A stretch of DNA of 64,000 nucleotides, from contig CM074815.1 in NCBI GenBank assembly GCA_037447605.1, forward strand, positions 2,170,001 through 2,234,000, read 5' to 3'. The translations under genes were made by a program, and so were the position numbers. This document shows positions 19,601 to 32,403 of the stretch, in pieces (the stretch's first letter is position 1; the number at the start of each line of letters is the position of its first letter). The notes under the pieces are model-generated. The model made no database searches. It saw only the letters and a list, made by a program, of their open reading frames with translations, and was not told where the DNA came from. This stretch comes from Zygnema circumcarinatum SAG 698-1b (Eukaryota; Plantae; Zygnematophyceae).

Positions 19601-22280
19601 CCTTTTCTAAACCCCTCATTCCCTTCTTCCTCTCCATCTCCCTCTCACTCACTCCCACTCTCACGCGCTCTCTCGCTCGCTCTCCTCCTTCTCCCATGCT
19701 CCTCTCCCTTGCCCCCAACTCTCCCTCTCTCTTCCTCCGTATCCCGCCGGCCCTCTCTCTCGTCCCCGCTCTCCCTCCCCCACTCCCGTTCGTGCTCCCT
19801 CTCCCATCTCTCCCTCTCCCTCCTCCTGACTGCAGAAGAACTTTCTCGGGCGGTTCATTGGAGGGGCGCAGAGAGATGCCGACCCCGAGAACCGCCTCCA
19901 CCAGCGCGGCCGCCAATGGATGGCCGTCTCGCTGTTGGACATTCTGTTGACCATAAATCCGTCGGATGTAACGGAACGCTTTCACAGAGTCAAGCAGCTC
20001 ATGACCTCCTACGACTACGAGGGAGCCATGGAGGACTTGCAGGTGGGTAAGGAATGAAGCTGCACTTTGGCTTGAATTGCACTTTCTTATGGTCCGTCGC
20101 ATTGTAACTTTTTTCTATTTTGGGCCCCAGATTTTGATGCAGGTCGCCGGACCCCCCCAACGCGGAGGCGGCGGAATTGAAGGCGTTCATCAAGAGCTGC
20201 TCTCTCAGTACATGCAGAGGGCGCAGGAGATGCAGAGGGAGCATGAGGTGTGTTACTTTGGGGTGTCGAGAGAGAGAGCGAGAGAGAGAGAGAGAGAGAC
20301 AGAGAGAGAGAGAGAGAAAGAGGAGGGAGAGGGAGAGAGAGAGAGAGTGGAGGGAGAGAGGGAGAGGGAGGGAGAGAGCGGGGGAGAGGTGGAGGCGAGG
20401 GCAGGGGTAGGCGTCTCCCTTGGGCTTACCTCTGTCTTTGCTTGCATGTGAAGGCCCGTTGCAATGAACGGAGTACGCCTCGCAGTTCTTTCGTTCAGTT
20501 TTCCGTTGGAGCGATTGTGCGGCACGTGCGGCTCGGATACCGCGGAGTGGTCTACGGGTGGGATCCGGTTTGCAGCGCGAGTGACAACTGGATGGCGAAC
20601 ATGCAGGTGGGAGAGGGAGAGGGAGAGGGAGAGGGAGAGGGAGAGGGAGTGGGCGAGCGGGGGAGAGGGAGTGGGCGAGGAAGAGGGAGAGGGAGAGAGG
20701 GAGGGAGAGATAGAACGGTTTGTTTGCTTCTAAAAACCCCCAGAAAGTTCTCCAGTATATTCTGAATCATTGAGACTGAATGAGAAACTTAAACAAATAA
20801 ACAATTATGTTTATTTGTTTGAAATTAAAGCGGTTTTGTAGTCAAAACATATATGAGTAATTCATACTGAATTTCTCAATTGTTCGATTTTCCAAACATG
20901 TCCTAAAACGGAGTATATTCATTAAGTATGTATTGTGTCTCAAATAGCGTATTGAAAGTATGAATATTCCTATATTGATACTAACTCTCTCTCTCTTTCT
21001 CTCGCTCTCGCTCTTACTCTCTTGCTCTCCCTCTCTCGCTCTCTCGCTTTCTCGCTCTCTCGCTTTCTCGCTCTCTCGCTTTCGCCTTGCTCTCGCTCTC
21101 TCGCTCTCTCGCTCTGTCTCTCTCGCTATCTCCTGTCTCTCTCTCTCCTCTCTCCTGTCTCTCTCTCTTTCTCTCTCTCTCTTACTCTCTATACAGGTGG
21201 ACCGGCTCCGGCAGGGTCGCCCGCAGCCGTTCTATCGTGTGCTTGTGGACGAGAGGGACAAGTGGCCGAGCCAGTCCAGCTATGGTGAGAGAGAGGACGG
21301 CTCCATGCTTCGCCTCCGTTTCCGTTTAAGTTGCCATTTGTGTTTGATTTTTGGCTTTTGTTGAGCTCAGTTGAGGAACCCTGAACCCTGCAAAACCTGT
21401 CTATTGTACCGAGGACTGTTCCCAAACTCTGAAGATTGAGTTAAAAACCCTAAACCTCTTATTCCTAAGAAGCCTCAAGAAGTTAAAAAAGCTCTAAATA
21501 AACCCTGACAGCCCTCCTTCCTTCTCGCAGTGGCGCAGGAGCTGCTTGCCATCTCTCCGGACATGGGACCAATAACACACGAGGAAATTGGGGCATATTT
21601 TCGCGGTTTCCGGTAAAGTTTTTTATAATGACATATTTAGCCCTGCAAAATGCCGACCAATACCACTGGAAAGTAGAACCACACAGCCCTGTGGAGGCTT
21701 TCTATGTGGCCTTTTCCATGTATCCAACCGGTTCCGTTGGCTGTTATGGACGTGCAGGGGGGGGCGATACGTGCCAAACGCCTTTCTCCAGTTCCAATAT
21801 CCGGAAGATTTTGCAACGGATAGCTACGGTTATCAGAGCCATGGAGAGTGGAGTGGTGGTGGGAGAGAAGATCAGGGAGGCAGTGGGAGTGGGAGAGGGG
21901 GAGGGAGTGGAGGAGGGAGAGAAGATCAGGGAGGGAGTGGGAGTGGGAGAGGAGGAGGGAGTGGGGGAGGGAGAGAAGATCAGGGAGGGAGTGGGAGTGG
22001 GAGAGGGGGAGGGAGTAGGGCAGGGAGAGAAGATCAGGGAGGGAGTGGGAGTGGGAGAGGGGGAGGGAGTGGGGGAGGGAGTGGCGCGGAGGGGGGCAGT
22101 AGTAGTACTGGTGGGAGCGGTGCCTCGAGGGGAGGGGGGTTCAGGGGAGGTCCATCTGTGCACCGCGAGGGAGTCACCCCATGGATGCCCTCAGAGTCGA
22201 AGTGCAGCGCTGCAGGACCTGTCTGTAAGGGTGATCGAGAACCTGAACTAGGGTTCCGTTGGCTCACTCTCACTGAATGA
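13302..22280 (+). CDS. FBXO21-like protein: F-box + SirB1/transglutaminase-like + TPR-like helices + YccV/HspQ hemimethylated-DNA-binding-like domain; contains an in-frame TGA
   Basis: Exons 13302-13397, 14541-15176, 16448-16576, 17266-17312, 17527-17613, 18213-18410, 18829-19005, 19303-19402, 19836-20042, 20143-20247, 20454-20606, 21198-21285, 21531-21612, 21758-22280. Motifs: [29 protein letters not shown] (F-box); [28 protein letters not shown] and GIPMHFL (SirB1); [32 protein letters not shown] and YVAQELL (YccV). Confidence 0.85.
21862..22075 (+). repeat. Coding tandem repeat, about 4 x 54 nt ([18 protein letters not shown]), in the last exon of the F-box gene
   Basis: Repeated GGGAGAGAAGATCAGGGAGG...; visible in ORF 21588..22280. 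Confidence 0.85.
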
Positions 22281-24847: not shown

Positions 24848-27800
24848 ATGGCTACGGCGGAAGGATGGCTGGAGGAGCACCTGCTAGGTTTGGCTTTTCG
24901 GATAAACCCTGAAAATCTAAAACCCTGAATAGGTTTTGATTTTTTTGCTACTTGTTTGCATCCAGCAACCCATAGAAAAATCTTCAAATTCTATGAAATT
25001 CAACCCTCGCATTTTGAATTTCTACTTTTCTCTAATAAAAAAAATAATGTGCGACTGAATATACTATTTGAGCAGAATAATTATGTTTCGAAAGAGGGTT
25101 TCAGGAACTTTTAATCTTTTCACGTTTTCTATCATTTTGGTTTCATAGGGCTGCAGGGTTTTCGATGTTTTAGGTTTGTAGGATTTTAGAGTTGCAGGGT
25201 TGCAAGGTTTTAGTTTTTTAGGGTTTTATATTTTTATGTTTGTAGGTTTTTAGGGCTGTCATAAAACCAAACAACGTTCTGGTTTTCCAGTGAATTTTTT
25301 TCGGATTTTTCAAGAAAAAGTCCTCAAATTGTGCTGATTTCCTCCTTGTGGGGCAGATAACGTGAGTTCAAAACTTTGACTCTAATCTTTTTTCTTCTCC
25401 CCTCCCCCCTCCCCCCTCCCCCCTCCCCCCCTCCCTTCTTTGTTTTTTCCCCCTCAGGAATGCGCGACCTGCTGCCATTTTTGGACGCGGACATGGTGGG
25501 AGGCCTCGTCAGCTACTGCCCGCATGCATCGGACGAAGGCGTGGGGGAGTATCTCAAGGTATTTAAGCCCTAATTTCAAAAAAATTTAGGGGGTTTTTTT
25601 TTTTGAACCCTAAAAACTAACCCTAATATCCTAAACCCTAAACCCTAAACTGTAAACTTAAACCTTAAAATTTAAGCTCTAAACATTTAAAAAAAAGGCG
25701 TTCGTATTAGGGTTCGAAAGTGCCAAGTTCATAACTTGGAAAATTTTGGGGTTCGTTTCTGGTACATGTAGGGCTATAAATGTTATTTTTTTCTGCATTT
25801 CTGGAATTGTTTTTTTCATTTTTCCGCAGAATCTGATCGGCGACAGTCAGCGCGCGAAGGACATCGTCGCGGGATATTTGCAGCGGCGGGCAGCGCAGAG
25901 GGCCAATCAGAGCGCTGCGATCAGCGGCGGGCAGGCGGAAAATTTTAACGGCATGCAGACATATATGAAGCCGAAGGCGGAGGATGATCGGAGCCGAGGA
26001 AGCAAAAAAGCCCCAAAACAAAAGGAGAAATTTTCGGCCCCTCCGGCTGCTCAACAGAGAGGAGGGAGTCTCCCATTGAATGGTAGCAATGGGAGAGGAG
26101 TGGGAGAGGGAGCAGTGGGAGGAGTGGGAGAGAGAGGAGTGGGAGGAGTGGGAGAGAAAGGAGTGGGAGAGAGAGAAGTGGGAGTGGGAGCGGGAGGAGG
26201 GAGGAAGGGAAGGAAGGGGAAGGGAGTGGGGTTAGCTGACATAGAGAAGGGGAGGGTGATCTTCTCTCGCACGGGTGTGTGTGAGTGTGCGGCCGCCCGC
26301 CACCGTCTGGTCAACAACTGTCTCGCGTGTGGGAGAGTGGTGTGTGAGCAGGAGGGGGAGGGGCCCTGCAGCTTCTGCGGAACCCTAGTTTTGAAGGAGG
26401 GGAGTGAGTATGCGGGGCTGGAGGCAGAGGGAGAGGGAGTGGGAGAGGGAGTGGGAGTGGGAGTGGGAGTGGGAGTGGGNNNNNNNNNNGGAGAGGGGGA
26501 GGGGGAGGGAGAGGGGGAGGGAGAGGAGTCTCGGAGGAGGAGGCGAAGGCGATTGCTTTCAAGAATAGGCTTGTTGAGTACGATCGCACTTCCGCCCAAC
26601 GGACGGCTGTGATCGACGATCAGAGCGACTACTTCCAAGTGGAGAGCAGCAAGTGGCTCTCTCCAGAGGTGATTTTTTTTTTTCCCTTTTGGTTCTTTTT
26701 CTTACCTTGTTTGGGTTTAGGGCCTCTAGGGTTAAGGGTTGAAGGGTTCAGGGTCGTAGGATTTCCTCAAAAAAGGATTAGGAAGCCTTAGACCACATCC
26801 ACACTCTAAATATGAAGACCAGATAGGTCCTGAACCCTGAACCCTAAAGAGACTCCAAAGGGGGCCTGAGACGGAGCAGGAGAAGGAGCAGCTGCTTAAA
26901 CGGCAGGTGGCAGAGAAGGAGGCGGCGGAAGCGCAAAGAAAAAAAGTGGTCGTCACTTTCGACCTCGTTGGAAGGAAGGTAAAAAAAAAAAAAAAAAAAA
27001 AAAAAAATGTCAAATCAAGAAACCGAAACCCCGAAAGTCTCTATCTAAGATTCGAGTACCCTAAAAATTCTAAAATTTCTATGCTCTCCTGCAGGTTGTG
27101 ATGGATGCTGCAACCCTAGAAGCGGCTGAGGCAGCCATGGATGGACCTTCCCCTTACTCAGCTTTTGCCCCTCTCGAGACGCGCCCTTCGAAAGGAGTCA
27201 AACCGAACCCTACTTTGCAACTTCCCCCTCCCAAATTTGTCACCTCTCCCTCCTCTCGCCCTGGTGGGAGTGGTGGGAGAGGAGGGAGAGGAGGGAAGCT
27301 GAAGGAGGGAGAGAAGGGTAGGACTGGCCGCATACAGCATGATGACCCCCTAGTGGAAGCTATTAGAGGTGGGAGCCTTGAGGGAAGCTCGGTGGGAGAG
27401 AGAGAGGGAGAGGGAGAGAGAGGGGGAGAGCGAGAAGGAAGCCAAAAGTGGCAAGGGCCCCATGTGAGTGGAGGAGGAAGTGAAGCGTGGGCGGAGGGAG
27501 AGGGAAACTACGAGTGTAATTCGACAACGTCTGGGAGAGAGGGAGGGAGTGGCAGCCATGGCTGGGAGAGGGACGGTCTTAAAGGGAAGGAAAGCGGTTC
27601 AAAATTAGGGTTAAGAGGAGCTTCTGAATCCCCGGAAGTCTTTGATATATGTGAGGAGAAGACAGGTGGCAGCCAAAGAGTGGCCCTGCAGTTAGCACCG
27701 TCAGCTTATCAGGTGAAGCAGCTGAAGAAAGGAGAGAGTGGAGGGGAGGGAGGGAGGGCGGAGGTTCTCATGGATGGCATGGTGCTTCTCCGTCAATGGC

Positions 27801-29112
27801 TGACAAAGGAAGAGCAGGTCAGAGATATTTCATTTCCTTTTTCCTCTTAAAAAGAAACAACAGAAAAGCTCAAAAAAGGGGCGGACAGAGAAAAAGGGAC
27901 ACAGTTTCTGTTTTCACATGTTCCAGAATCTGTGCACCTTCCTTTCCGAACTCAGAATCAATAGCCCCCAATTTCCTTCAGCTTTGCAGAATTCTTCCTT
28001 GTTCCCCTGACCTTCGCTCCCATCCCGAACCCCTAAAGCCTCTCAACCCCAAAAGCCCCAAACTTCAAACTTTCCCTCTTTCTCTCTCTCTCGCTCTCCC
28101 TCTGTCCGCTCTCTCCTCTCCCCCACCCCTTCCCCTTCCCCTTCCCCTCACTCTCGCTCCCACTCCACCTCTCCTCTTTCTCCTCTTCCCCTTCCCCCCC
28201 CTACCCCTCTCCTCCCCTCCCCCCCTCTCACTTCCACTCTCTCTCCCCCCTCCCCCCTCTCCCCCTCCGCACTCTCTCCTCCCCCTCTCCCCCCCTCTCC
28301 CTCCCTCCCTCCCTCCCTCCCTCCCGCAGATCTCCCTCATTCTCGAATGCCGTCGTCTGGGCACCGCCCCTGGAGGGTTCTACGTCCCTCGCTTCCCTGA
28401 CGGCTCCCGCCTTCGCCTCCTCATGCTCTGCCTCGGCCGCCACTGGGAGCCCGCCACGCGGCAGTACGGCCCCGCCCGGCCCCTCCACGACGGAGCCGCA
28501 GCGCCGCCCCTGCCGCCCTCCTTCGCAGCCATGGCCGGCAGGGCCGTGGAAGCTTCGCAGAAGCTGCTGGCCGGGCAGGGCAGCAGAAGCAGGCTGCCCA
28601 GCATGAAGCCGGACGTTTGTTTGGTCAACTTTTACGAGCAGAGCGGCAGTTTGGGCATGCATCAGGTGGGGATATAAGGACTCTACAAGCCCTAAAGTAA
28701 ATAATAATAAAAAATATAATAATTATCTTATCGTCCTGAGCACCCCAAATCCTTAAAGAGATTTAGAGACTAGAAACTACTAAGGAATCCTAATACCGTT
28801 CTTTCGCACTCCGTTCGAGAAATTGCTGCGCTGCAGGATAAGGATGAAAGCCCCACAAGCTTACAGGAGGGCGTGCCAGTTGTCTCCTTCTCATTGGGCG
28901 ACTCTGCGGACTTCAATTACGGAACGGAGCGGAGAGCTGACCTGGCAAAGACCCTCGTTTTGGAGTCGGGCGATGTCCTGATTTTTGGAGGACCCTCGCG
29001 CTTAATTTTTCATGGAATCTCAAAAGTGCATCCTAAGACGGCTCCTGATTGGCTGGTCAGGGCCACAAATTTGCGGCCAGGCAGGCTGAACCTCACATTC
29101 CGAAAATTGTAA
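24848..29112 (+). CDS. Fusion of plant TRIP4/ASC-1-like zf-C2HC5 protein and an AlkB (ALKBH1-like) 2OG-Fe(II) dioxygenase
   Basis: Exons 24848-24887, 25459-25558, 25831-26668 (spans N gap 26480-26489), 26880-26978, 27095-27817, 28330-28665, 28837-29112. Motifs: CECAAARHRLVNNCLACGRVVCEQEGEGPCSFCG; AIAFKNRLVEYDRTSAQRTAVIDDQSDYF; VVVTFDLVGRK; GRIQHD; then PDVCLVNFY, GMHQDKDE (HxD), VVSFSLGDSADF, LESGDVLIFGGPSRLIFHG and RLNLTFR. Confidence 0.85.
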
Positions 29113-29710
29113 ACTTTTGTATGGGCAGCACTTTTGACCTTTTTGTTGCCTTCTGTCATTGAATCCACCGTCTCCTTATTGTTTGGGTACTTGAAATGTT
29201 AGGGTTTACAGGGAGGGTTCAGGGGGGGGGGGGGGGCTGTAACCAGGCTGATCTTTCGGGTCTTTTTTTCCGGGTTTTTTTCGTATTTCAAAAAACCGGT
29301 AAACAAACCACAGAATGTCACTTTACTGATATTGAGCGAGAGGGCTGCTCTATGTTACACACGTTTTGTGACCAAATACTGCTGCTGTAACTGAACTCGT
29401 CAGATGAAACCGGAGCCCTGACTCTTGTACACATTCTTGTTCGCAATATTTACAGGTTTTCAGGACTATGTACAAAGATGCCTCACTCTCTTGAGTATCC
29501 GATACAACTACAAGAAAAAAAGGGGGGGAAAGGAAGAAAAGGCGACTCCTCCACATTCTCCCTCTCCCCCCCCCCTCTCCCTCACTCTCTCCACCTCCCC
29601 CTCTCTCGAGAATCCCCTCTCAACAAGAGAGAGTTCAAACTGAAAAAACTGTGCCCTGCTTTTTCTGACCCTAGTCCACTTTCCTCAAAATTTGAATTTT
29701 GTGCTTCCCG

Positions 29711-31857
29711 TCACTTATCGTGAAACGTGGGCGCCCGTTTTTCCATGAAGGCCGTCATTCCGTCCGTTTGGTCCTCCGTCCCAAACGTCGCATGGAATAG
29801 GTTGCGCTCCGTTCTGATGCCCTCCCTCAACCCTAATTCGTAGGCGGAGTTGACCGCCTCTTTAGCCATCATGACGGCCGGCTTTGACAACTTAGCAATC
29901 TGCTTTCCTATTTCGACCGCCTGCTCCAAAAGGGCTTCGTTGTCTCCCTCCACCTGCCCATTCAACAGCCCATTCAGCAAAATTTACCATTCCACACACT
30001 TTCTATACTTCCTTACATTTTAATTTCACTAGTCAGTTAATTAATTAGTTAGTTAGCTTTTTTTTATGTGTGTGTGTAACGGCACAGTTGTGAGCTTACC
30101 ATACGAGAAGCAAGCCCTCTCTGTACGGCTTCCCGAGCATCCAGGAAGCTTCCTCCCGTTAGAATCATCTCCATGGCCCGGGACTTGCCCACAATGCGAA
30201 CGAGCCTCTGCGTGCCGCCCATCCCCGGGATGACGCCCAGCTTCACCTCTGGTTGTCCAAAAAGGGCCCTCTCTCCCGCCAAGACGATGTCACACATCAT
30301 GGCGAGTTCGCACCCACCCCCAAGAGCATATCTGCATCATGCCAATGTGTGGGAGGGAGTGAGGGACGGAGAGTGAGGGGGGAGAGTGAGGGGGGAGAGT
30401 AAGAGGGAGTTCAGGAGGGGATGTGGGATAGAGTGGGGAAGAAGAATGAGAGGAATTTTAGGAGGGTGTGTAGGATAGAATGGGAGAAGGAGAGTGAGGG
30501 AGTTTAGAAGGAAGTGTGAGATAGAGTAGGGGAGAGAGAGTCAGGAAGAACAGTGGAAAGAGAGAGAAAAGGTTAGAGATGGTGGAAGGAATCGACAGGA
30601 AGGGAGAGGGGGTGAGAGGAGGAGGAGGCGGGGGGAGATAACGAAGAGGGGTTGGAGGGATAAATGAGGCAGAGAATGAGCGAAAGAAGGGATATGGGGG
30701 AAGGCGGAGGGGGAGGGAATATTGGGAGAAACGAGGGAGGGGGAGAGACGATGAGTGTCTTTGATTTTAGAATCACACGTCTCTATGGCTCACCCATTCA
30801 CAGCTGCAATAATCGGCTTCCGAATGCCGAAAATGCCATCCCAGCCGGCGAGAAGATTGGTGCTTCGAGCACTTGTGAAGGTGAAGTCTTTCATCTCGCT
30901 GATGTCAGCACCTGCGGCGAAAGCTTTACCCTCCCCTGTGATTATTATCGCTGCCACCTGTCCACCACCGTGAGGCAGATAGCAAAAGTGAGGGAGGGGG
31001 GGGGGGTGATAAAAATAAAGTGAGGAGACGATCTCTGCTTTTTTCCGCCTGGAAGCAGACACCAAGCAGGAAGTATTGAACTTTGTAAATAGAAGCGAAT
31101 TCTGCTGTTTGAGTTTGTGTTTGTGTTGGGGTTCTAGATATTTGTGTTTAAGAGAAAGGCGAGAGGAGGGGGGAAATAGGGAAAAAACTAACTAAAGGTG
31201 AAATCAGTGGAAGAAAAAAAATAAAAAACATTCATTAACCAATAATAACAATATTTTTTTGGTTGGTTGACATTTGATTACTTTTGGATGGTCGTCGAAG
31301 TCCCGAAAGGCGCCGACGACCTCTCTCATCGTGGCGCTCGAGAGAGCGTTCAGCGCCTTTGGGCGGCTCAGAGTGACCAATCCGAGGCTCTCCTGCTCAA
31401 GCAGCTGGACACGTATCATCTTGTTATTCGCCCAGCTGGCAGATTCTCGCACCTCCTCCTTCGCTTGACCCACACCACTACTTCCCTCGTGGTTTATTTC
31501 TTCCTTTCCTGCAACGCTGCTGAATGAAACGGATGAAGGTGCAACGCTGCTGAATGAAACGGATGAAGGAGCAGATGCCGACATATGCAAGCATGCCATG
31601 TTTCTTGATAAGCATCTTAAGGAGAAGTCTGGAAAGACATTTGAAGATGTTGAGTTTGGAAGTGAGAGAAAGGGAGGCGCTTGTGCATGAGCTGTGGTTT
31701 GTGCTGAGGAAGCCATTGCTCCTGCAAGATAATGGTAAGGCTTGGTCTGCAAAGGCTGAAGTGAAGCAAGGTTTGGAGAATGAGGATATGGATGATGCGC
31801 TTGGAGGGAAGGCAGAACCCTCCAGAGCCTGCTTGCAGCTCCCCTGGAGGAAGCCAT
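29711..31857 (-). CDS. Enoyl-CoA hydratase (crotonase, ECHS1-like) with a long N-terminal targeting-like extension
   Basis: Exons 31857-31282, 30957-30794, 30331-30100, 29953-29711. Motifs: [13 protein letters not shown]; [12 protein letters not shown]; [23 protein letters not shown]; [20 protein letters not shown]; [13 protein letters not shown]. Confidence 0.92.
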
Positions 31858-32403
31858 GGCTGCCTGCCCCTGCTGAGGAAGAGGGAGAGAGAGGAAAGAG
31901 GGGAAGGGCCCTTTTAAAACTGACCAAGAAGAAGGGTGGCCTTGCACGAAACTCCTCTTAGCTGACAGGTGTGTCTGTACGGAAAGGTACAAAATGATAC
32001 GGTATGGTACGGTGTGAATCAAATGCATTGTACGGACGAGAAAGTGACTGTTGGTACAGTACACTGTACATGTACGGACGGCCTTGAAAGGCTCTCACAG
32101 GCGGCCTTCTGGGCGCCGAGTGGAAAAAAAAAAAAAAAACGAGAGAGGCGAAATTTCTAAAGAAATTTGTGTTCACTGATGCACATATTCTTTGATATTC
32201 TTTGATGTCCTCCTCTTTGGATATCTGCGGACATTTTTCTATTTCATGCATTGCTCTTTGGCTGAGGCGGATGCGCCGGAATTAGGCGATTTCATGTGAA
32301 GACGATCATGGACATTGGATGAATGAAGGGAAACAGCTCGAATAGGAGGAGAAAACCCTAAAAAAAATAGGGTTTAGGGTTCAGGGTTCAGGATTTAGGA
32401 TTT

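Follow-up and report, generated by a model that had tools for sequence, protein, structure and literature searches.

The window analysed here is a stretch of 64,000 nucleotides from the zygnematophycean Zygnema circumcarinatum SAG 698-1b (GenBank assembly GCA_037447605.1, contig CM074815.1, positions 2,170,001 to 2,234,000 of the forward strand), and all positions below are those of the window. On its + strand, seven exons at 24848-29112 encode, in this order, a TRIP4/Rqt4-like N-terminus, a C2HC5 zinc finger, the TRIP4_3rd domain, a long open exon and an AlkB dioxygenase. Most likely, the locus is one expressed gene of about 800 codons, the orthologue of an old TRIP4-AlkB fusion protein of the green lineage.

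Exons and domains of the locus

The stretch is present in seven public sequencing runs from three studies, and 5401 letters were compared with the contigs of four of these runs; they are taken as RNA-derived because their contigs skip GT..AG introns. The exons were refined with the RNA joints. Exon 1 (24848-24887) comprises an ATG, 13 codons and one further nucleotide (MATAEGWLEEHLL); read from the sequence, it starts the TRIP4 N-terminal helical domain, and it aligns to the N-termini of the fused orthologues of Riccia and Closterium. Its splice to exon 2 is not directly seen; upstream of exon 2, beside a masked T-rich repeat, 27-77 letters of the RNA contigs are unplaced. Exon 2 (25458-25558) continues the helical domain (MRDLLPFLDADMVGGLVSYCPHASDEGVGEYLK), is collinear with the orthologues and is joined to exon 3 (25558->25830) in four of four runs. 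Exon 3 (25830-26668) holds a G/E/V low-complexity segment, the zinc finger (26280-26381), a tandem repeat with an assembly gap, and the start of TRIP4_3rd, which runs to WLSPE at 26654-26668. The remainder of TRIP4_3rd lies in exon 4 (26880-26978; EKEQLLKRQ...VVVTFDLVGRK). The joint 26668->26880, present in runs X2 and X6, sets the start of this exon at 26880 and corrects the value of about 26868 given in a preliminary description, which had been made from the letters of this DNA alone.

For the Pfam searches, each exon translation was queried singly and the exons were kept unjoined. Exon 3 matches zf-C2HC5 (PF06221; 2.3e-11, 43.9 bits against a cut-off of 25.8), and all eight zinc ligands are present at 26280-26378 (C151, C153, H158, C164, C167, C172, C180 and C183). 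TRIP4_3rd (PF23134, cut-off 27.7) is divided by intron 3, so that the end of exon 3 covers profile positions 1-17 (7.7e-6, 26.6 bits) and exon 4 covers positions 15-50 (3.8e-7, 30.8 bits). These pieces score near the threshold because the exons were searched apart; intact orthologues reach 58-69 bits. With a C2HC5 finger that has its eight ligands and with PF23134 after the finger, the N-terminal half is a member of the TRIP4/ASC-1/Rqt4 family.

Exon 5 (27095-27817), the junction exon, has 241 open codons that contain a TRIP4 motif and the AlkB start; it gives no Pfam match. The N-terminal half of AlkB follows in exon 6 (28330-28665) and the C-terminal half in exon 7 (28837-29112), which closes with the stop codon TAA at 29110-29112. 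Both match 2OG-FeII_Oxy_2 (PF13532), exon 6 over profile positions 18-113 (1.4e-10, 42.1 bits) and exon 7 over positions 115-194 (8.1e-25, 88.6 bits). The iron triad is intact (H 28660-28662, D 28837-28839, H 29011-29013), its HxD being interrupted by intron 6, and the 2-oxoglutarate contacts are present as NxY at 28624-28635 and as RxxxxxR at 29083-29103 (RLNLTFR, with R at 29083-29085 and 29101-29103). These catalytic residues align to Escherichia coli AlkB and to the rice structure 5XEG. Judged by full-length PF13532, the iron triad and the 2-oxoglutarate contacts, the C-terminal half is an AlkB family member with predicted demethylase activity. No ASCH domain was matched by Pfam in any exon of the window.

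The window exons are collinear with those of the fused orthologues described below and share with them the linker motifs KPNP, GR[IV]QHDDP, W.GP, EC, FDIC and L.PS..KQ. The window agrees with 69 of the 71 columns that are invariant across 12 fused orthologues, and differs from the orthologues in extra G/E/V/R low-complexity inserts, which surround the gap in exon 3 and also occur in the linker.

The junction exon and its transcripts

The TRIP4 and AlkB parts meet inside exon 5. Its reading frame has no stop over 241 codons, versus 11 and 12 stops in the other two frames. From 5' to 3', this frame carries the TRIP4 motifs KPNP (27200-27211) and GRIQHDDP (27326-27349), a GA-rich repeat (27394-27439), the linker motifs WQGP (27449-27460), YEC (27509-27517) and FDIC (27641-27652), and, 138 codons past GRIQHDDP and still in the same exon, the first strand of the AlkB fold, VLMDGMVLLRQWL (27764-27802). 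The end of the exon aligns to the first AlkB strand of the orthologues (VLxPGxVLLKxWL). The 421-nt linker, about 140 codons, stays open in 0.08% (0.0008) of mononucleotide shuffles. The claim of the preliminary description that TRIP4 is fused to an intact AlkB in frame and within one exon is thus confirmed by the Pfam domains, the absence of stops in exon 5 and the residues present.

Such a fusion may also arise as an artefact of assembly or gene modelling, if neighbouring genes were misjoined at a gap or at a low-complexity repeat. Indeed, a gap of 10 N lies at 26480-26489, within a tandem repeat of 6/12/18 nt (26421-26526) in exon 3 that encodes G/V/E low-complexity sequence between the zinc finger and TRIP4_3rd, and several exonic repeats break the public contigs. 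Reading from 25830 up to the gap and reading on from 26492 in the conserved frame (VSEEEAKAIAFKNRLVEY...) can be reconciled only by a gap whose real length is 2 mod 3; as the nominal 10 N has another length, the continuity of the frame across the gap is not established. However, the gap is located in the TRIP4 half, with over 600 nt between it and the TRIP4-AlkB junction downstream, and both of its sides are collinear with the orthologues, while the junction exon is contiguous and its sequence at the junction uninterrupted. In addition, independent runs from three studies carry the same exon 5 at 99-100% identity, spliced to the AlkB exons, and the same architecture occurs in at least 10 other species. 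An artefact is, with these observations, close to refuted. Upstream of the gap, a GTGAGT at about 26403-26408 was considered as a cryptic splice donor and rejected, as it encodes the conserved SEY of 'EGSEYAGLE'.

The contigs skip introns 2, 3, 5 and 6 at GT..AG sites. For intron 4, the length of record 2 of run X1 fits 26908-26978 joined to 27095-27385. Introns 2-6, five out of six, are thus confirmed by the RNA. The joint 28665->28837 (GT..AG), which completes the HxD, is found in four of four runs. All four runs cover exon 5 at 27093-27385 and 27440-27817 with 99-100% identity; exon 4 together with 27093-27385, that is, beyond GRIQHDDP, is on another contig in every run, and record 20 of run X6 (1025 nt) unites 27440-27817 with exons 6 and 7. 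The preliminary description had asked for reads over 27340-27817 and 28330, and record 20 provides the part from 27440 to exon 6, while 27386-27439 is unbridged. Contigs from both sides extend about 36-39 nt into the GA-rich repeat, and the contig depth in X6 is alike on either side of it (99 vs 88.5). The AlkB-side contigs include the W.GP and EC motifs, which in seed plants are the property of the TRIP4 gene; therefore, the RNA crosses the point that divides the two seed-plant genes. The fusion is thus transcribed and spliced as previously modelled, with the exception that no contig runs through 27386-27439, and a single transcript from the zinc finger to AlkB is very likely, although it is not read directly.

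An alternative is that the locus mainly yields two proteins, a TRIP4-like one through an alternative end and an AlkB through an internal start, with the fusion as a minor read-through product. The distal part of exon 5 has just two in-frame ATGs (27770 and 27779), directly before the AlkB core, either of which may serve as such a start. Two separate proteins are made in seed plants, in Ginkgo a TRIP4-only model (426 residues) coexists with a fused one (665 residues), and contigs cannot reveal where transcripts start or end. In contrast, the linker frame stays open for about 140 codons (p about 0.0008 by shuffling), the linker motifs are kept across species, and the RNA contigs extend at least 330 nt upstream of the ATGs with similar depth on either side. 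No splice joint or end within exon 5 was reported in the contigs of the four runs, and transcript-derived fused open reading frames occur in Psilotum, Prasinococcus and many Logan assemblies. We consider it improbable that two proteins are the main products, and we retain the reading of one expressed fusion gene.

Several further features were observed at the locus and around it. Downstream of the stop codon, run X2 shows an intron in the 3' untranslated region (29119-29246, + strand; joint 29118>29247). In run X6, an alternative donor at 29109 (joint 29108>29247) removes the stop codon, and, as read from the sequence, a tail of about 50 residues would be added. RNA contigs over the 3' exons of AlkB continue beyond 29700 towards a convergent gene on the - strand (29711-32064), whose exons are enoyl-CoA hydratase/crotonase-like. 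Run X4 has 15 nt inserted in frame after 26143, where exon 3 is of G/E/V low complexity, and, at low depth, a T>A change at 26323 that turns Leu to His one residue past a zinc ligand; both are likely strain polymorphisms. Telomere-like heptamers (TTTAGGG / AACCCTA) are found in introns 1 and 2 (25146-25254; 25606-25691) and cause many false joints in the contig comparison. At 21588-22280, overlapping open reading frames consist of GVGVGEGEG-type repeat units that resemble the low-complexity inserts of the fusion gene, and purine-rich coding repeats seem to be common in this genome.

Fused relatives in the green lineage and two genes in seed plants

Exon 7 was used as a phmmer query against 1.84 billion representatives, and 1392 matches were obtained, the best identity being 71%; many of the closest are proteins of 640-940 residues with a C-terminal AlkB domain. 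Pfam, together with local searches that used the other window exons, shows zf-C2HC5, TRIP4_3rd and AlkB combined in two Closterium species, Riccia sorocarpa, Diphasiastrum complanatum, Psilotum nudum, Adiantum nelumboides and several transcript assemblies. In Prasinococcus capsulatus, TRIP4_3rd and AlkB are called; the zinc finger is uncalled by Pfam, though its cysteine pattern aligns. The TRIP4 part of the Adiantum protein (P0160, residues 1-330), used as a second query, added fused proteins of Ceratopteris, Ceratodon, Sphagnum, Calypogeia and Riccia fluitans. Examples of public fused orthologues are those of Closterium sp. NIES-68 (GJP34498.1, 835 residues), Riccia sorocarpa (KAL3691554.1, 735 residues), Diphasiastrum complanatum (KAJ7531020.1, 762 residues), Ceratopteris richardii (KP509_18G051500) and Sphagnum fallax (BDL97_15G031200). 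Their domain order is that of the window, from the N-domain through zf-C2HC5, TRIP4_3rd, RVQHDDP and the W.GP / EC / FDIC linker to AlkB. Several fused orthologues are derived from transcriptomes, fused open reading frames being present in Psilotum, Prasinococcus and many Logan assemblies. In the ESM Atlas, 54 members, mostly from Streptophyta, form a cluster with this architecture. In a tree of AlkB domains, into which exons 6 and 7 of the window were entered as separate fragment rows, exon 6 clusters with Closterium (SH-aLRT 91).

The window gene is therefore a member of an existing, widely distributed and uncharacterised TRIP4-AlkB fusion family of the green lineage, and its membership as one polypeptide follows from the open exon 5 and the RNA contigs. 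The preliminary description had held that this lineage hard-wires the two domains. This does not stand, since the same architecture is found in Closterium, two Riccia, Calypogeia, Ceratodon, Sphagnum, Diphasiastrum, Psilotum, Adiantum and Ceratopteris. That plant TRIP4-like proteins are as a rule without a catalytic domain, as it also stated, is true of the seed plants sampled and of Selaginella, but not of the bryophytes, ferns and Diphasiastrum sampled. Among the findings that would overturn it, it had named a fusion that is widespread and already annotated, which is largely what the public orthologues present. Nor is the architecture undescribed: the proteins are deposited, merely as 'hypothetical' or 'Fe2OG dioxygenase domain-containing protein', and a 2026 paper on N6-methyladenosine (m6A) genes lists, in passing, a zf-C2HC5 domain in Ginkgo GbALKBH1B (665 residues) (PMC13296198). 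Apart from this mention, no functional study of a TRIP4-AlkB fusion was found in the open-access literature, where absence is not proof.

Seed plants show a different arrangement. Stand-alone proteins named 'activating signal cointegrator 1', of 375-435 residues, are found in all listed angiosperms, in Cryptomeria, in one Ginkgo model and in Selaginella; Ginkgo has both a TRIP4-only model of 426 residues and a fused model of 665 residues. By Pfam, the seed-plant TRIP4 homologues have only the zinc finger and TRIP4_3rd, and ASCH is thus not universal in the TRIP4 family. A tree of the TRIP4 part mirrors the species tree, with liverwort, moss and fern clades that are all fused and one stand-alone clade of seed plants (support 93/100); a second case of the stand-alone form is Selaginella. 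The 10 kb that follow its gene downstream contain no AlkB gene, and the downstream gene encodes a leucine-rich repeat protein.

The linker appears to record how the two seed-plant genes came about. Stand-alone seed-plant TRIP4 proteins continue for about 45 residues beyond GRVQHD and end in W.GP...EC.LDY. GRIQHD, which the preliminary description took for the usual terminal motif, is present in the window; however, it is not terminal in seed plants, and its human counterpart precedes ASCH. Angiosperm AlkB-only proteins (ALKBH1D-like and others) have only the distal linker segment, FDIC...L.PS, before the AlkB core. On these motifs, the halves of a putative ancestral linker are shared out between the two seed-plant genes. 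The divided motifs and the TRIP4 tree, taken together with the fused algal outgroups, point to an ancestral fusion that would later have undergone fission between EC and FDIC in seed plants, and the fused state looks ancestral in the green lineage.

Three unusual proteins were met among the relatives. A transcript of Welwitschia mirabilis (P0015, 429 residues) leads from the TRIP4 N-terminal helical domain directly to the distal linker and AlkB without zinc finger or TRIP4_3rd; it could represent an isoform, or else an intermediate stage of the split in seed plants. P0138 (937 residues; run SRR29179181; L001 1-2903) combines zf-C2HC5, TRIP4_3rd, ASCH and AlkB, that is, a complete animal-type TRIP4 plus AlkB. 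In Riccia fluitans, R1flu_002774 and R1flu_002776 (P0031, P0176) lie two locus tags apart on one contig and have near-identical AlkB domains; one is fused (736 residues) and the other (775 residues) is without a detectable TRIP4 part. By its sequence, this pair looks like a recent tandem duplicate.

A possible link to the ASCC3 helicase

A profile built from the 12 fused orthologues was matched to chains of the PDB. It matches human TRIP4 (8ALZ, residues 18-431, 2e-60) and yeast Rqt4 (7ZPQ, 9e-20) on one side, and rice OsALKBH1 (5XEG, whole core, 5e-108), E. coli AlkB (about 2e-23) and human/mouse ALKBH1 (about 3e-13) on the other. For exon 7 alone, OsALKBH1 5XEG is the best solved relative (9.4e-34), with human/mouse ALKBH1 and E. 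coli AlkB at about 1e-10. Chains of ALKBH2 or ALKBH3 are absent from the PDB matches at E<=0.001 for exon 7 or at E<=0.01 for the orthologue profile. The N-terminal domain, the C2HC5 finger, the third domain and the lasso to RIQ(H)D are common to the window protein, human TRIP4/ASC-1 and yeast Rqt4; the C-terminal end of human TRIP4 is ASCH, whereas the window protein has the AlkB dioxygenase there. RVQHDDP aligns to LRIQDQEF (424-431) of human TRIP4, immediately ahead of ASCH, and therefore the tether and AlkB sit in the ASCH position. In the AlphaFold2 model of a Riccia orthologue, the N-domain and the AlkB core are ordered, and the tether between them, about 160 residues long, has a low confidence that rises locally to a peak at FDIC.

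The nearest AlkB clade is that of rice OsALKBH1 and the angiosperm ALKBH1B/C/D-like proteins, which have the distal FDIC...L.PS in common with the window. These angiosperm proteins lack the zinc finger and TRIP4_3rd, and their N-terminal extensions are unrelated. The named top library matches are 'DNA N(6)-methyladenine demethylase ALKBH1D-like' and DNA oxidative demethylase. By homology, the AlkB half is assigned to the OsALKBH1 / plant ALKBH1B-D clade and is not an ALKBH3 orthologue; the comparison with ALKBH1B/C/D that the preliminary description had called for gave a tree that is consistent with this clade, albeit poorly resolved. With E. coli AlkB, the window shares an identical HQDKDE iron-site motif, NxY, the further H and RxNLTFR, but the enzyme of the bacterium consists of one domain, about 216 residues long, and has no targeting module.

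On this basis, we propose the following mechanism. The N-terminal half, a TRIP4/ASC-1/Rqt4 homologue consisting of the helical N-domain, the C2HC5 finger, TRIP4_3rd and a 'lasso' ending in GRIQHDDP, is followed by a partly conserved, mostly disordered tether (W.GP, EC, FDIC) that leads to a complete AlkB-type Fe(II)/2-oxoglutarate dioxygenase. By analogy with human and yeast, the zinc finger may dock the protein on ASCC3/Slh1's C-terminal helicase cassette. In the human complex, the TRIP4 zinc finger alone docks stably on the C-terminal cassette of ASCC3, with ASCH at the DNA exit (PMC10076317), and in yeast, the zinc finger of Rqt4 packs onto RecA1 of the C-terminal cassette of Slh1 on the ribosome (PMC9938168). 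The tethered AlkB may thereby meet the single-stranded DNA or RNA that the helicase extrudes, and it may oxidatively strip methyl groups from bases, either lesions of the 1-methyladenine/3-methylcytosine (m1A/m3C) type, or N6-methyladenine (6mA), or both. The human equivalent would be ASCC3 working with the separate ALKBH3, an alkylation-repair complex in which an AlkB dealkylase is paired with a helicase that supplies its single-stranded substrate (PMC10076317). Seed plants would later have split the gene between EC and FDIC into a stand-alone ASC-1 and ALKBH1B/C/D-type enzymes.

A different role can be envisaged for the same fused protein. TRIP4/ASC-1 was originally described as a transcriptional co-activator (PMC4738411), and the TRIP4 part, instead of working with ASCC3 at stalled ribosomes or in repair, may act as a co-activator or chromatin tether by which an OsALKBH1-type demethylase of 6mA in DNA is aimed at transcribed genes. 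The AlkB half is nearest to OsALKBH1, which is reported as a 6mA demethylase that is also active on single-stranded DNA (PMC8118384) and is associated with a flowering-time phenotype, and ASCH, the domain that AlkB replaces, is a predicted reader of modified bases. However, the conserved TRIP4 parts are the zinc finger and the region next to it, which contact ASCC3/Slh1 in both solved complexes, and the active-site motif HQDKDE recurs unchanged in E. coli AlkB, which is a repair enzyme. We consider such a co-activator role rather unlikely.

Several points speak for caution about our proposal of a single, ASCC3-coupled fusion protein. The frame through the N gap is unconfirmed, although order, strand and collinearity with the orthologues hold on both sides. 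No listed contig spans the 54-nt GA-rich stretch 27386-27439, a masked repeat, and the runs are not recorded as RNA, their RNA nature being inferred from splicing. The AlkB tree is too poorly resolved to nest the seed-plant AlkB-only proteins within the fused clade, and it is the accepted species tree, rather than a rooted gene tree, that gives the direction from fused to split. What is said of ASCC3 binding, of the substrate and of the setting in the cell, be it ribosome rescue, DNA repair or transcription, is inference only. In addition, human TRIP4 and ALKBH3 exclude each other in binding ASCC3, and human TRIP4 knockout leaves the sensitivity to methyl methanesulfonate unaffected (PMC10076317); taken together, TRIP4 in humans does not by itself form a module of repair. 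The analogy to human ALKBH3-ASCC3 drawn in the preliminary description is weakened by the same exclusivity and by the AlkB half, which is OsALKBH1/E. coli AlkB-like and not ALKBH3-like: human ALKBH3, a polypeptide of its own, and TRIP4 are competitors for ASCC3, whereas the AlkB of the window is fused. Its use of the fusion as a Rosetta stone that links AlkB to the ASCC3/RQT scaffold follows a reasonable logic, from which the lineage-specific hard-wiring has to be removed.

For the Zygnema genome, nothing more than an ordinary orthologue is at hand, and a lineage-specific invention can no longer be claimed. The wider meaning lies with the family. We tentatively suggest, as a possibility that we rate somewhat below even odds, that the plant ASC-1/Rqt4 homologue and the OsALKBH1/ALKBH1B-D dioxygenases both go back to the fusion as their ancestral form in the green lineage, with AlkB in the position of ASCH. 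This family-level picture of ancestral fusion, fission in seed plants and replacement of ASCH by AlkB appears to be undescribed in the open-access literature searched. The fusion is kept from prasinophytes to ferns and split in seed plants, which is a strong natural hint of a functional link, and it would be what nature offers, in a single chain, as a counterpart of the human pairing of ALKBH3 with ASCC3. On this hint, the ALKBH1B-D / OsALKBH1 enzymes of plants, whose substrates are still debated, may be tied to the ASCC3-TRIP4 (RQT) helicase machinery, a hypothesis that can be tested. If the fusion is indeed the ancestral form of both, an AlkB clade now viewed as a free '6mA eraser' would have evolved as an ASCC3/RQT-coupled dealkylase of single-stranded RNA or DNA, and the two halves that were separated in seed plants may still cooperate.

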